DNA from: Takakia lepidozioides
Taxonomy: Eukaryota; Plantae; Bryophyta
Assembly (NCBI GenBank): GCA_030704615.1
Contig: CM060734.1
Location: 49,414,001 to 49,478,000, forward strand
DNA length: 64,000 nt
Direction of reading: 5' to 3'
The position numbers were made by a program, and so were the translations under genes. The notes below the pieces were generated by a model, which saw only the letters and a list, made by a program, of their open reading frames with translations, did not search any database and had not been told where the DNA came from. Of the stretch, positions 59,140-64,000 are shown one piece after another (positions within the stretch are counted from its first letter, which is position 1; every line of letters begins with the position of its first letter).

Positions 59140-60535
59140 TGGTATCAGAGCTTAGAGTTCAGTACGCGATCGTCCTTGGGATCGGCCTCATCATGGGGTC
59201 GGGCAAGCCAAAGCGAAAGCGGAACGGCCCGAAAGATGATGATCATGGTGAGCCCGATGGGGGCGACGTGTCACCAAAGCGGCCATTTGAGGAAGCGATG
59301 CATGCTTTTGAAAACGAGACCTCTCAAGAAAGGGAGGAATCTGAGGAGTCAGAGTCCGAGGAATCCCTGACAGACCAACAGATGCCTCCCATGCCAGCAG
59401 CCTTTTGGGAAGGGTTGTTGGCGTAGTTTGGCGGAACGTTGAAAGACGTGTTGAAGGCGGGTAATGCCACTTCTACTAAGGCAAAGTTTAAGGTGAAGCC
59501 TAAGGAACCCGGCACCTTCGAGGGCGTCCAAAATCGGAAGGCACTCAACACTTGGCTCTTGGAGCTAGAGAAGTACTTCCGGGCGACCAAGTTGAGTGAC
59601 GAGGATCGGGTGGAAGTGGTTCCCACCTATTTAAGGGGCTATGCTCAACAATGGTGGCAGAAACGCCTTCACGACCGAGGTCCAAACCCGGAAACCTTGA
59701 ACTGGAGTGGGTTCAAGGAACTTATGAAGAAACAGTTTGTGCCCCTCAACGCATCCTAGCTCGCCCGGGACAAGATGAGGAATTTGAAGCAAATGGATGA
59801 CATTCGGGGATATGTTCAGGCTTTCAATGTGCTGTTGCTCGAAGTCGCGGACATGGCAGAATTAGAAATGGTCTTCAACTTTGTGGCGGGACTAGCCCCA
59901 TGGGCCAGACGAAAGTTGGAGGAGAAGCCACCTAAGACTTTGAACGAGGCAATTGAGAGGGCTGAATGTTTCTCGGATGTCTTTAGGGGCGAAAGACAAG
60001 GCCGTACGGAGCTGAGCCACAAGAAGACCCGGCGGGAGGGTGACTCTTTTCGACCGGAAAAGAAGTGGGATAGGCCACGCGGCGACAATGGCACGTGGAA
60101 ATTGAAGGGAGGGCCTTCACACACCAAGACGACACCCGGTGCTCCGAAAGGAAAATTAGGTGCGACGCCTTATGGCGGACAAAAGGCGACCTTCGATGGA
60201 GTGTGCTTCAATTGTGGGGAGCCCGGGCACATGGCCAAGAAGTGTACAAATCCTTGACAATTGAACATGACTCGGGCAACCACGAAGTTGTCTGAAGCTT
60301 CCATCAGCCGCTTGGTGGAGGCGGTGGTCGCCAAGACTTGCAAGGTAGGCAACTACTCTTGTGAGTTGTATCAGGAAACTGGCGCCTTGCGTAAAGGGAG
60401 TCAGTTAATGTTTGTGAGTGGGATAATCTCCGGAACTAACGTGTCCTTGTTGGTGGACACAGGAGCGTCGCACTCCTTCATGACACCGGCAACGGCACGG
60501 AAGCTGGGACTCCCGACAAGGGATGTGGGGGCCGT
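59140..60535 (+). mobile_element. Ty3/gypsy PBS, gag and protease (dead, truncated)
   Basis: KPKEPGTFEG...LNTWLLELEKYF...AQQWW; zinc knuckle CFNCGEPGHMAKKC; protease LLVDTGASHSF. In-frame stops at ~59424, 59757, 60255. Confidence 0.9.
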
Positions 60536-63500
60536 TCTGCCAAAAGAGAACCACAATTGGCGACGAGGGTGACGTTCGATGAGGGCATTACAAGTGGATA
60601 AGGATAATGGGAGGGATAGCGGGGAGGTGTAGCTTGATGATTTGAAGGTGTGATCGGAGGGAGAGAACAACAGGTATTTTGACCGTGGTGCTGGGGGAGT
60701 GATGTGTGCGAAGGATACCAAAAGCCACTCCGCCCCGAGTGGGATGATATGGCGCGGAGCGTCTAAGTAGGCATTGTGCGGCTGTGAAGGAACTGCCATA
60801 TAGCAAATAGTAGGCTGGAAGAAGATTGTTGATGTAGGAGCTGTTAGGGCCGTGTGTGCACTCGTTCCTTCCCTTATTTGGTATATTAAAAAAGAATCTA
60901 CATCATCCAAACTCACTACCAAAAGTATTGCTCTGCTCAAAACCCCAATTGCCATTCGACCAAAACTATCAATTATTCAATCAGTACTACAAACACAAAT
61001 TCAATACTCGTTCCACGTCGCACCCTTCTTCTTATCAGCCATCAAAAAACTTGATAAAAATATTATCCAGCTAACAAAACGTGTATGTGGTCTACCAACT
61101 AGCATCCCCAATGCCCTCATACAACTACCTATGGACCACTATGGCATTGGTTCGAGCCCATTAATCATCTCATATGCTCGCACATTAGGCACCCAATTAA
61201 AAGAAGCACTCAACGATCATGGGCGTCTAGGTATCATTTATCAGGGACTTCTCAAATACCTTACATCTAAATACAATGGCCTATATTCATTATCATCCCT
61301 ACACCCACAAGCCTGTCTACACTCCCCCACTGCACACACACTACTCATCTTGCGCCAAATGAAAATTAGCATACAAACTGATCCGCCTAACTATCCCAAC
61401 ACCTCATCACCCTTAGAACGCGCATGGCTTACAAGCCCGTCTCTACCACAATTTAACATTTCCTATCCCAAACAAAAAGTCCTCATCCTCACATATTTCA
61501 AAGAACGACACATCACCACCCTCACCCAACTTACTACCGCCACTGGCCATAGACTTTTAAAACCTAGCGAATTCACTCTTAAATTCTCCGGAGCCACGAC
61601 CAAAACCAATCGCTACCTACATCATCTTCGTACCCTCTTCTGCCATCCCTCGACCGCCTGCACTCTACAATGTGACCTCTCATGCCTCTACTATCCGCAT
61701 ACGGCTCAAGACCTGCTCCCCCAGTACCGCTCTACCCCTACTACCTCCATCTACCAAACACTCAAAACGGCATATACCAGACATAGAATCTGATTTTCCC
61801 TCTCAAGTAACTAACACACAACACCCTGAACCTATCCGCCACTTGCATACGCCATCCAATCCCTCACCTACAAGGCAAGGATCCCACACCCCCCTAGTCA
61901 CCGCACCATCCCCCCCATCCTCACCACAATACGATGACAATAACAATGCTTACATCATTGAAGCTATACTAGGAGTTAAAACCCAAACGTCCATTGATTC
62001 CTTTGGAGCCACCTGCATTGATACATACTATCACTGTCAATGGGCTGTGTACTCTTCCGCAGACAACACATGGCAGATAGAAGATGACCTCTTCGGCCTA
62101 CATGACGATTGCGACCCCGAACACAATCTTGCCCTCCTCACCACCTTCCACAAACAAACCAACACCAACTATCTAACACACATGCACCAACAACACACCA
62201 CTCCCGCCCAACCTACATATAACAGATATATACACCAACCACTATATGCCCCCAACGTGCACATCTGCATAACTGAATGTAATCCTGACAAAGATGTCAA
62301 GCATGATCAACCTCTAATCCACATGGGCCCCCGCCTTTCCAACATTTACGCTCAACATGGCCGCTTCATTGGCCTCATCCCCAATACAAGACTAACGTGG
62401 CTCTGGGAGAAATACTCTACTACTACCTCATCCCCACAATCGCTACAACCCCCGAAACAAGACTTTGCTACCGAATTATATTGGCTGGTTGATCGCTACC
62501 TCAAAGACACTCCCCCCAAGAAACTGCGGTCCCTCATTAAATTGGAAACAACATGTGCGCACCATACTATACCCCAAGATATTCTCTCCTTACTTATCAA
62601 CACATTCCAGCTTACTCACTCATATTACTCCAACCCACTGACATGCCTTATGGCATTGCCCACATTTTCTAGCCCGCACCACAGAGACTGTATCTTTGGA
62701 GCCACTGGTACTGCCACCCAGCACACCTGGGAAGGCCGGGGCCTTGCCCACCCTCCACCTGGTTCTCCTTCTCACGAAGCTCTTCAATGGGCAAAACTTG
62801 TTGCGCACTCCTCTCCTACTGCATCCACAATCCTCATCCTCACACAACAAAACACTCCTAATATCTCTCACCCTCTTCTACAACTCCTAGAAGAGGTCAA
62901 TCTACTCGCCACAATTGACCCAAACCAGCTTAAGTATATTCATACCCCTCCTCTTCCCAAATATCTCCAACGGAAGGAACCCACCCTAACCCTGATTCTA
63001 CACATCCAAAACCCCCGCATACAGCCATACCGCCATTTTACTTTTCTCAGCTCGAACAATTGCTCACCATCACTCATAAAATAAAGGCCACCATCCATTA
63101 TCCAACCATCCTCTCCCACACCCAGACACCCACCACATTGTCCCGGATCAAAACCAACAAAGCTTGGAACATTGCGACACCACGCCCTTCCCAGGTCGCG
63201 CCAACAACACCTCTACCCCCAATTCCTGCAATATATCAACAAAACACCATCCCCAAATACCCACTGGCCAATTCCCATTACACTAACGGATCCCTCGCCA
63301 AACCTAATGCAGGGTATAGAATCTATCACGCTGGCACCAGTCAAGGCGTTGCCCTCAGACTCCCTGGCCCTGCCACTATCCTCCGGGCTGAACTCATGGC
63401 CATTTATGACGCCCTCTCTCTACTTGACACCTCCCCGCCCCCCCCCACACTACATCTTCACCAACAGCCTTACCTCACTATTCCTCATCCGCAACCACAT

Positions 63501-64000
63501 CTCCCACCCCTCTGCCCATCATCATCACCCCGACCGCAACCTCATTGCCACTATTGTCCAGAGGGCCATCTCCCTAGGCCACCCAGTCCATATACTCAAA
63601 GTCCGTTCGCATACTGGCATCCATGGTAATGAAGAAGTAGACCTACTCGCCCAACTTGGCGCCTCCCAACCCATAGTTGAACCCTCGAATGACCCTATTC
63701 ACATCGCCCACACCCATCCCTTCTAGTTCATACACCCCGTTCCGGACCCCCCTAGTCCGAAACCTCCTGACCACTCTGACCAAAGAAGCAAATAGACAAG
63801 CGGCAACCTCTATCAGCCATACCAAAGTACACAACTCAATCCAATGTACTGCACCATAAACTCTCCAATCATTTCTGGCTAACCAAAGCCACCACCGACG
63901 CACAAATCCGACAAACACTCAAATTCCGATATGCCCAATACATGGGCCACTAGTGCAAACACATCTTCTGGCCACATCTGTTCCCATCCCCATACTGCCC
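60536..64000 (+). mobile_element. Non-LTR retrotransposon (Dualen/RandI-like by inference): inverted APE-like piece, RT thumb, chromodomain, PCIF1-like MTase-like domain, RNase H, start of zinc finger; runs off the right edge
   Basis: RT thumb KLSIIQSVLQTQIQYSF...IKKLDKNIIQLTKRVCGLP...YGIG; RNase H YTNGS...TILRAELMAI...IFTNSL...LKVRSHTGIHGNEEVDLLA; end LKFRY...YCP. Strongly C/A-rich sense strand. Frameshifts near 61790, 63060, 63440. Confidence 0.8.

Follow-up and report, generated by a model that had tools for sequence, protein, structure and literature searches.

Can a retrotransposon carry, within its own polyprotein, a domain homologous to the mRNA cap enzyme PCIF1/CAPAM, and what would such a domain do there? 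The question is raised by a locus of the moss Takakia lepidozioides (GenBank assembly GCA_030704615.1, contig CM060734.1, positions 49,414,001 to 49,478,000 of the forward strand), a stretch of 64,000 nucleotides (nt) that is referred to here as the window. An initial annotation, made from the letters of the window, had proposed that positions 62560-63010 encode a PCIF1-like adenine methyltransferase-like domain of a retrotransposon, lying in one open frame with a chromodomain and ahead of RNase H, and had read it as a mobile reader-writer system that could N6-methylate its own RNA cap, its cDNA or target DNA. Our best explanation, to which we assign a probability of about 0.7 as a whole, is that the module is the PCIF1-type methyltransferase-fold part of a dead, 5′-truncated copy of a Dualen/RandI-type retrotransposon without long terminal repeats (non-LTR), that it is a true PCIF1 homologue whose catalytic tetrad is degenerate throughout a plant-type branch of the family, and that in this branch it probably serves as a non-catalytic binder.

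Translation of 62560-63010 on the plus strand reproduced exactly the peptide quoted in the initial annotation, including an HPPP tetrad, and the PCIF1 core string given there agreed with the aligned human and zebrafish PCIF1 sequences. The window copy matched the Pfam family PCIF1_WW (PF12237) with an E-value of 7.5e-4 and 19.6 bits, below the family cut-off of 31.1 bits; the Pfam core spans amino acids (aa) 254-363 of a 470-aa open reading frame (ORF), that is, nt 62431-62760. A phmmer search with the whole ORF against the sequences of the Protein Data Bank (PDB) returned only chromodomains and no PCIF1 match, because a single sequence is too diverged and a family profile is needed. On its own sequence, the window copy does not establish the link to PCIF1.

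The relatives of the domain gave a clearer result. A phmmer search with ORF aa 188-470 against 1.84 billion representatives yielded 248 proteins at E ≤ 1e-3, including 78 at E ≤ 1e-10, with a best E-value of 4.7e-59; a word- and length-dependent protein search with the 283-aa domain gave none at E ≤ 1e-10, a blank that says little. Many of these relatives exceeded the PCIF1_WW cut-off by themselves (P0140, 54.1 bits; P0136, 51.7; P0115, 48.1; P0006, 44.5; P0105, 39.7; P0147, 36.8), and so did six open-frame metagenome ORFs, at 32-46 bits. A profile built from the alignment of the window copy and its relatives (A1) matched the PCIF1 structures 6irx and 6irv with E-values of 4.8e-10 and 5.5e-9, and the profile of a core-only alignment (A2) matched the same entries at 7.9e-8 and 1.3e-7, respectively. 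The top PDB matches of profile A1 were WD40 repeat proteins, which were rejected since no stretch of them passes singly and a short Y-x-p-d-G...L-W motif fits every blade.

Structure comparison pointed to the same family. The AlphaFold2 model of ORF aa 150-470 (predicted local distance difference test 79.5, predicted template modelling score 0.73) was compared with the PDB by Foldseek, as the initial annotation had suggested: human and zebrafish PCIF1 took the first six places (probability 1.00, E from 3.2e-10 to 3.5e-8) ahead of the next match at E 4e-3, and the Rossmann fold is present in the model. With VIA-align, model residues 63-312 were superposed on residues 417-665 of human PCIF1 (Z 17.4, root-mean-square deviation 4.0 Å, 223-226 residues); the next family, DIMT1/KsgA, reached a Z of 8.3. 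In a feature search of the ESM Atlas, 30 of 30 clusters were PCIF1_WW. The nearest of them contain PCIF1_WW proteins of 260-330 aa, and their few labelled members belong mostly to Nucleocytoviricota, which suggests that giant viruses possess stand-alone PCIF1-type domains close in features to the LINE (long interspersed nuclear element) domain studied here.

A conserved block at 62239-62545, upstream of the Pfam core, was also apparent among the relatives (alignment A5). It reads E-C-N-P-D-K-D-I ... I-Y-x3-G ... R-L-x-W-L-W-x-Q-Y ... P-P-x-Q-D-F-x-T-E-x2-W-L-x-Q-R-Y, is modelled as three short strands plus helices, and falls for the most part (from model residue 63 on) within the structural alignment with PCIF1. 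The Y-x-p-d-G...L-W motif behind the false WD40 matches belongs to this block.

The resemblance is confined to the methyltransferase domain. No WW domain was matched by Pfam in the window ORF, and nothing N-terminal of residue 417 of human PCIF1 was matched in the structural alignment, which covers residues 417-665. In PCIF1, the helical domain N-terminal of residue 417 takes part in cap binding (PMC10544176, PMC13290413). The WW, linker, helical and methyltransferase architecture of PCIF1 was not found; a chromodomain-like module stands upstream instead. Judged by sequence and modelled fold, true homology links the LINE module to the methyltransferase domain of PCIF1/CAPAM (residues ~417-665 in human). 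The presence of a PCIF1-type methyltransferase-fold domain in a retrotransposon polyprotein, as first proposed for this locus, is upheld by the Pfam scores (sub-threshold in the window copy, above the cut-off in relatives), by the profile match (E 4.8e-10) and by the predicted fold (Z 17.4).

The features of the element and of its immediate neighbourhood are the following, all on the plus strand:

59439-60572, plus strand: fragment of a Ty3/gypsy LTR retrotransposon, with gag, a CCHC zinc knuckle and the start of an aspartic protease (Pfam).
60852-61793, plus strand: 5′-truncated start of the LINE, a 313-aa ORF for the polyprotein part just C-terminal of the reverse transcriptase (RT) catalytic domain (blastx).
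61672-63084, plus strand: 470-aa open frame that covers both the PCIF1-like domain and the chromodomain-like stretch ahead of it (ORF list, translation).
61951-62094, plus strand: chromodomain-like module, ORF aa 94-141 (Pfam Chromo, PDB chromodomains).
62305-63054, plus strand: predicted PCIF1/CAPAM-type methyltransferase-fold domain, ORF aa 212-461 (Pfam, profiles, AlphaFold2 model).
62749-62760, plus strand: motif IV position, H-P-P-P, where PCIF1 has NPPF (column alignment, DSSP of the model).
63255-63720, plus strand: RNase H domain split by a frameshift, with 63255-63425 in one frame and 63451-63720 in another (Pfam, blastx).
63816-64000, plus strand: LINE tail, running into the window end, with an in-frame stop at 63951-63953 (blastx).

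The Dualen/RandI clade of non-LTR retrotransposons reportedly goes back to Kojima and Fujiwara in 2005. By blastx, the window is collinear with the relatives P0136, P0141, P0002 and P0012. Positions 60870-61256 align with aa 184-312 of P0136, directly after the RVT_1 match of that protein at aa 12-181, and 60933-61430 with aa 2115-2280 of P0141. Further downstream, 62173-62859 correspond to the PCIF1 region of P0136 and 63454-63633 to its RNase H, with the same order in P0141, and both P0002 and P0012 align with the window from the PCIF1-like region to base 63998. The LINE-type succession of RT and RNase H is borne out by the alignment that follows directly on the relatives' RVT_1, together with the RNase H pieces. 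The complete order can be read in P0141, a protein of 3608 aa from an NCBI assembly contig, as Exo_endo_phos (the apurinic/apyrimidinic endonuclease, APE; 30.8 bits, cut-off 24.5), RVT_1, PCIF1_WW and RNase_H; on the metagenome contig of loci L030 and L031 the gene order is a weak Josephin match, Exo_endo_phos, RVT_1, PCIF1_WW and RNase_H. These gene orders show the PCIF1-type module to be a regular part of the polyprotein of a LINE family, located between RT and RNase H.

The regions that follow RNase H in P0002, P0012, P0115, P0136, P0140 and P0141 share invariant C-x2-C...H-x4-C, R-H-N/D, P-D and E/D...K positions, and their profile matched the solved R2 protein 9nl3_A in its zinc-finger and endonuclease C-terminal region (E 7.6e-9). 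The window aligns with P0002 and P0012 until base 63998, and the CCHC and PD...E/D...K region follows in those proteins, past the window end. Dualen/RandI elements are defined by their combination of an APE and a PD-(D/E)XK-like endonuclease (PMC3636483, PMC5029228, PMC9977147). The window copy shows neither endonuclease, because its 5′ truncation removed the first and the window ends before the second, so membership was assigned by collinearity: from the architecture of its relatives, the host is classed as a 5′-truncated non-LTR retrotransposon of the Dualen/RandI type. The 21.8-kb metagenome contig mentioned above (L030:1-17602, L031:1-9960) bears two head-to-tail copies of a type with an NPEY tetrad, with unannotated ORFs after RNase H, and its cysteine-protease-like (Josephin, weak) ORF upstream of the APE recalls the peptidase domains of some Dualen elements.

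The window copy itself is decayed. The APE and the RT catalytic core are absent, with truncation at about 60850, and the post-RT ORF has no Pfam match of its own. The 470-aa ORF is shifted by +1 with respect to the ORF that precedes it; in the relative L003, a single uninterrupted frame of 660 aa spans the stretch from the post-RT region up to and including the PCIF1-like domain. The window RNase H was recognised by Pfam in its second half only, at E 2.6e-4 and 21.6 bits (cut-off 25.8); its pieces correspond to aa 220-280 and 287-376 of P0012 and also to P0002, and the RNase_H of the relatives scores 54 bits. The split coincides with a run of C at about 63436-63450, which may represent a real mutation or a homopolymer error of the assembly. 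The tail aligns with aa 414-473 of P0012 (63816-63998) and with aa 438-487 of P0002 (63849-63998). Set against the collinear natural proteins by blastx, the copy changes its reading frame at least four times and has a single premature stop. Nothing in the window copy can function, because the APE and RT core are missing and the remainder is frameshifted at least four times and carries a premature stop. The initial description of the order of domains was correct in part: the chromodomain-like module and the PCIF1-like domain do share one frame and do precede RNase H, but RNase H lies in other reading frames. For annotation purposes, the region is transposon sequence and contains no host methyltransferase gene, and the dead copy is without functional consequence.

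The chromodomain-like module of the window copy is a divergent one. It matched Pfam Chromo (PF00385) at E 0.0021 and 18.4 bits, under the cut-off of 25.1 bits, and the chromodomains found with the 470-aa ORF among PDB sequences by phmmer (2m2l, 2rsn, 3g7l) had E-values of 0.009-0.04. The nearest relative, P0001, exceeds the Chromo cut-off with 36.6 bits; the other plant-type relatives show no more than a recurrent, divergent Y-x-C-Q-W ... W pattern. Chromatin-targeted integration is a plausible role of chromodomains in retroelements.

The residues on which catalysis would depend were then compared among PCIF1, the window copy and its relatives. N553-P-P-F556 is the catalytic tetrad of PCIF1, and its mutation to APPA or SPPG inactivates the enzyme (bioRxiv 10.1101/485862, PMC6318281). 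In the general motif [DNSH]PP[YFW], the target amino group receives hydrogen bonds from the first residue and from the backbone of the two prolines, with stacking on the base provided by the aromatic residue (PMC4738411). The H-P-P-P of the window copy is aligned to the ANPPF columns of PCIF1 and comes directly after a predicted strand (model residues 207-210 by DSSP), and it fails the motif at the fourth position, which is not aromatic. Among 63 plant-type relatives, recognised by an H-S-Y-F/Y-S-S-P-L-T-C block, the first two positions are H in 52 and P in 46, the third is P, T or H (21, 13 and 12 sequences, respectively), and the fourth is N in 20, D in 16 and T in 15, with an aromatic residue in just 5. 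The long-open-frame subfamily formed by L003, L004 and L005 reads FPTD or FPMD. More distant relatives read NPEY in eight cases, among them the full-length P0115, P0140, P0141 and P0149, and others read HPPY or HPTF.

Two further positions differ. Two residues ahead of the F-A-S-P-L-N loop, PCIF1 and the distant relatives have a Glu (E-C-F-A-S-P-L-N in PCIF1), which is replaced by Ser in the plant type; judging by other class I methyltransferases, this Glu may contact the cofactor. The Trp aligned with W588 of PCIF1, which contacts the cap (PMC13290413), is kept in the relatives as L-P-x-W or L-P-x2-3-W and is absent in the window copy. On the other hand, the D-x-x-F-G block and the S-P-L loop, both common to PCIF1, are nearly invariant among the relatives. 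On aligned sequences, the plant-type branch, window copy included, has not kept the adenine-binding tetrad as [DNSH]PP[YFW], other members reading HPxx or FPxD. The caveat attached to HPPP by the initial annotation, that catalysis might be altered in this copy or lineage, was right for the lineage as well as for the copy. Its suggestion to look for NPPY/F in intact family members received a divided answer, with 5 aromatic residues in 63 sequences and FPTD or FPMD in the plant type, and with NPEY in non-plant-type relatives.

Selection was estimated on relatives. A scan of metagenome contigs of the Joint Genome Institute with the plant-type alignment A4 gave 27 loci, most of them from one sample and several with frames open contig-wide; the 90% clusters of P0002 and P0012 contained near-identical sequences and were unusable for this purpose. 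Ratios of nonsynonymous to synonymous substitution (dN/dS) were calculated by the Nei-Gojobori method (NG86), which ignores the extreme base composition; the exact values are rough, but the margin below 1 is large. For the PCIF1-like core, dN/dS was 0.18-0.20 for L004/L005 (dS 0.20-0.21), 0.16 for L003/L004 (dS 0.42), 0.19 for L003/L005 (dS 0.38) and 0.14 for L013/L015 (dS 0.81). After re-alignment, the values were 0.11-0.20 in the core and 0.12-0.21 in the flanking parts of the ORF. The window copy is 43% identical to P0002 and P0012 in the PCIF1-like domain and 41-48% in RNase H, and about 17 positions are invariant among 11 plant-type sequences at 30-46% identity. These data indicate that the PCIF1-like domain of the relatives is under purifying selection and constrained like the rest of the polyprotein, which is what the dN/dS comparison advised in the initial annotation brought out (core 0.11-0.20).

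The plus strand is G-poor from about 60800 to the window end, with 12% G, 36% C and a GC skew of about -0.5. The skew is positive over the Ty3/gypsy fragment and flips past that point. A sense strand poor in G and rich in A and C is seen in plant-type LINEs in general, with a median of 11% G in the 27 metagenome loci, and the NPEY-type relatives L001, L002 and L030 have 21-26% G. A copy-specific G-to-A hypermutation was considered as the source of the G-poor strand and ruled out, given that the bias is common to 27 of 27 plant-type metagenome loci. The bias therefore characterises the plant-type branch and does not reflect damage to the window copy; it might stem from a sustained G-to-A pressure acting on the plus strand.

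The Ty3/gypsy fragment (Retrotrans_gag 26.5 bits, zf-CCHC 32.4 bits, Asp_protease_2 36.1 bits), whose protease match covers profile positions 1-37 of 90 and then breaks off, is separate from the LINE, which begins some 280 nt downstream. The neighbourhood is of the repeat-in-repeat kind, the LINE lying just downstream of this piece. The intervening ~280 nt (60572-60850), between the broken protease and the LINE 5′ end, are G-rich with positive GC skew, and the LINE relatives gave no blastx match to them on either strand, minus strand included.

How, then, would the plant-type module work? A non-catalytic and probably binding role is argued chiefly from the constraint on the domain, combined with a tetrad that does not follow the methyltransferase consensus. 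Methyl transfer by the canonical N6-adenine mechanism would have been lost in the plant type, and the module would act as a binder within the ribonucleoprotein of the element, its ligand being the template RNA, by its 5′ end or its nucleotides, or else a nucleic-acid partner; the chromodomain-like module may steer integration to marked chromatin. We consider it more likely that the plant-type module binds than that it methylates. The working reader-writer system first envisaged for this locus is not supported by a copy that is 5′-truncated and frameshifted and whose HPPP lacks the aromatic base-stacking residue, with Ser in place of Glu, nor by a plant-type tetrad that is not kept even in open-frame copies under purifying selection.

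Several observations weigh against this explanation. His is allowed as the first residue of [DNSH]PP[YFW] (PMC4738411) and is conserved in 52 of the 63 plant-type sequences, a few of which read HPPY, and the near-invariant D-x-x-F-G block and S-P-L loop could mean that the cofactor pocket is kept. Binding of the cap in particular is uncertain, given that nothing N-terminal of residue 417 was matched and the helical domain is part of cap binding, and that the window copy lacks the Trp aligned with the cap-contacting W588, which its relatives keep. In addition, the selection estimates by NG86 are uncorrected for the extreme base composition.

A wider proposal can be built on the same domain, although we regard it as speculative and rather unlikely. 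The PCIF1-derived module would be a device of the LINE for the 5′ end of its RNA, an active adenine-N6 methyltransferase in the relatives with NPEY and Glu and a 5′-end binder, dead for methyl transfer, in the plant type. The NPEY form would mark the capped transcript or the cDNA, and the plant-type binder together with the chromodomain-like module would deliver the ribonucleoprotein to marked chromatin. If true, this would be a mobile element with a captured mRNA-cap enzyme, caught at the active and pseudo-enzyme stages.

Among the alternatives to a binder, functional plant-type members might encode an active adenine-N6 methyltransferase dependent on S-adenosylmethionine, with His replacing Asn, which marks capped RNA or cDNA of the element itself or else the target DNA, so that only the window copy would be dead. 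The permitted His (PMC4738411) with its frequency of 52/63, Pro at the second position in 46/63, the occasional HPPY, the nearly invariant D-x-x-F-G and S-P-L blocks and the strong purifying selection would all fit such an enzyme, and PCIF1 is reported to have some in vitro activity on DNA (PMC9178792). However, 58 of the 63 plant-type sequences have no aromatic residue in fourth place, and there is free variation at positions 3 and 4, with N, D, T, P and H. The selected open-frame subfamily reads FPTD or FPMD, without a polar first residue, and the plant type has Ser instead of the Glu kept in PCIF1 and in non-plant-type relatives. Furthermore, the double mutation of N553 and F556 inactivates PCIF1 (bioRxiv 10.1101/485862), and nothing before residue 417 was matched. 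We consider an active plant-type enzyme improbable.

The plant-type domain might also be a functionless evolutionary relic, kept only as a folded spacer that separates RT from RNase H. A degenerate tetrad would be expected of it, and dN/dS in the domain does not fall below the values of the flanks, so that selection could be for the overall integrity of the polyprotein. This explanation has little in its favour against dN/dS values of 0.11-0.20 and about 17 invariant positions, which indicate constraint at the level of residues beyond the needs of a spacer, and against the retention of the domain from NPEY-type relatives to the plant type, where it is conserved about as well as RNase H. Finally, a chance resemblance to PCIF1 in a long G-poor frame, in keeping with the sub-threshold Pfam score of the window copy (19.6 vs 31.1 bits), with the failure of single-sequence phmmer to find PCIF1 in the PDB and with the scarcity of TGA and TAG stops in G-poor DNA, where long open frames arise easily, is already refuted by the relatives that exceed the Pfam cut-off, by profiles reaching E 5e-10, by the fold match at Z 17.4 and by dN/dS well below 1, and its probability is negligible.

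A family with both NPEY and degenerate-tetrad members offers a natural series in which to ask whether a LINE recognises or marks its own RNA with the help of a cap-enzyme fold. To our knowledge, no writer of cap-adjacent N6,2′-O-dimethyladenosine other than PCIF1 is known.

Compared with PCIF1/CAPAM itself, the module shares the methyltransferase-domain fold, the collinear L-P...F-x-S-P-L...D-x-x-F-G...G-x-x-x-A-x-P-P motifs and the place of the tetrad, after the fourth strand. It differs in having no WW domain, HPPP instead of NPPF, and Ser for Glu before ASPLN. The window domain is embedded in a LINE polyprotein, unlike the cellular enzyme associated with RNA polymerase II, and is not a PCIF1 orthologue.

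With Dualen/RandI elements it has in common the APE, RT, RNase H, CCHC finger and PD-(D/E)XK-like endonuclease of its collinear relatives, whereas neither a PCIF1-like domain nor a chromodomain is named in the published Dualen domain lists examined (PMC5029228, PMC9977147). Those lists comprise APE, RT, RNase H, CCHC and restriction-like endonuclease (RLE) domains and, in cryptophytes, also a SET methyltransferase and a C48 peptidase (PMC5029228); an active Dualen family is present in Chlamydomonas (PMC9977147). Like the chromoviruses, which are chromodomain LTR retrotransposons, the element has a chromodomain-like module within a retroelement polyprotein; its host is a LINE, however, and the module, below the cut-off in the window copy, lies between RT and the PCIF1-like domain and not at the integrase C-terminus.

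The closest precedent is that of DIRS1-type retrotransposons. In these elements, the methyltransferase-like (MT) domain follows RNase H; the LINE domain lies between RT and RNase H, after a chromodomain-like module. The host is here a non-LTR LINE whose relatives carry an APE and an R2-like restriction-like endonuclease, and no tyrosine recombinase was seen in Pfam scans of these relatives. The MT domains of DIRS1-type polyproteins belong to the PCIF1 clade, have been judged inactive (Iyer, Zhang and Aravind 2016, PMC4738411), and were proposed to bind template transcripts or to mimic PCIF1 (PMC4738411). Compared by description only, both cases present a PCIF1-clade domain with substituted catalytic residues in a retrotransposon polyprotein, and by analogy the LINE domain likely follows the same logic. 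Our literature search for PCIF1 together with non-LTR, LINE or Dualen elements, which did not extend to the original Dualen description of 2005, found nothing relevant. Degenerate PCIF1-clade domains were known from DIRS1, and what appears to be new is such a domain in a LINE polyprotein. Its regular presence, under selection, in a LINE family with two endonucleases means that unrelated classes of retroelements have retained a cap-enzyme fold.

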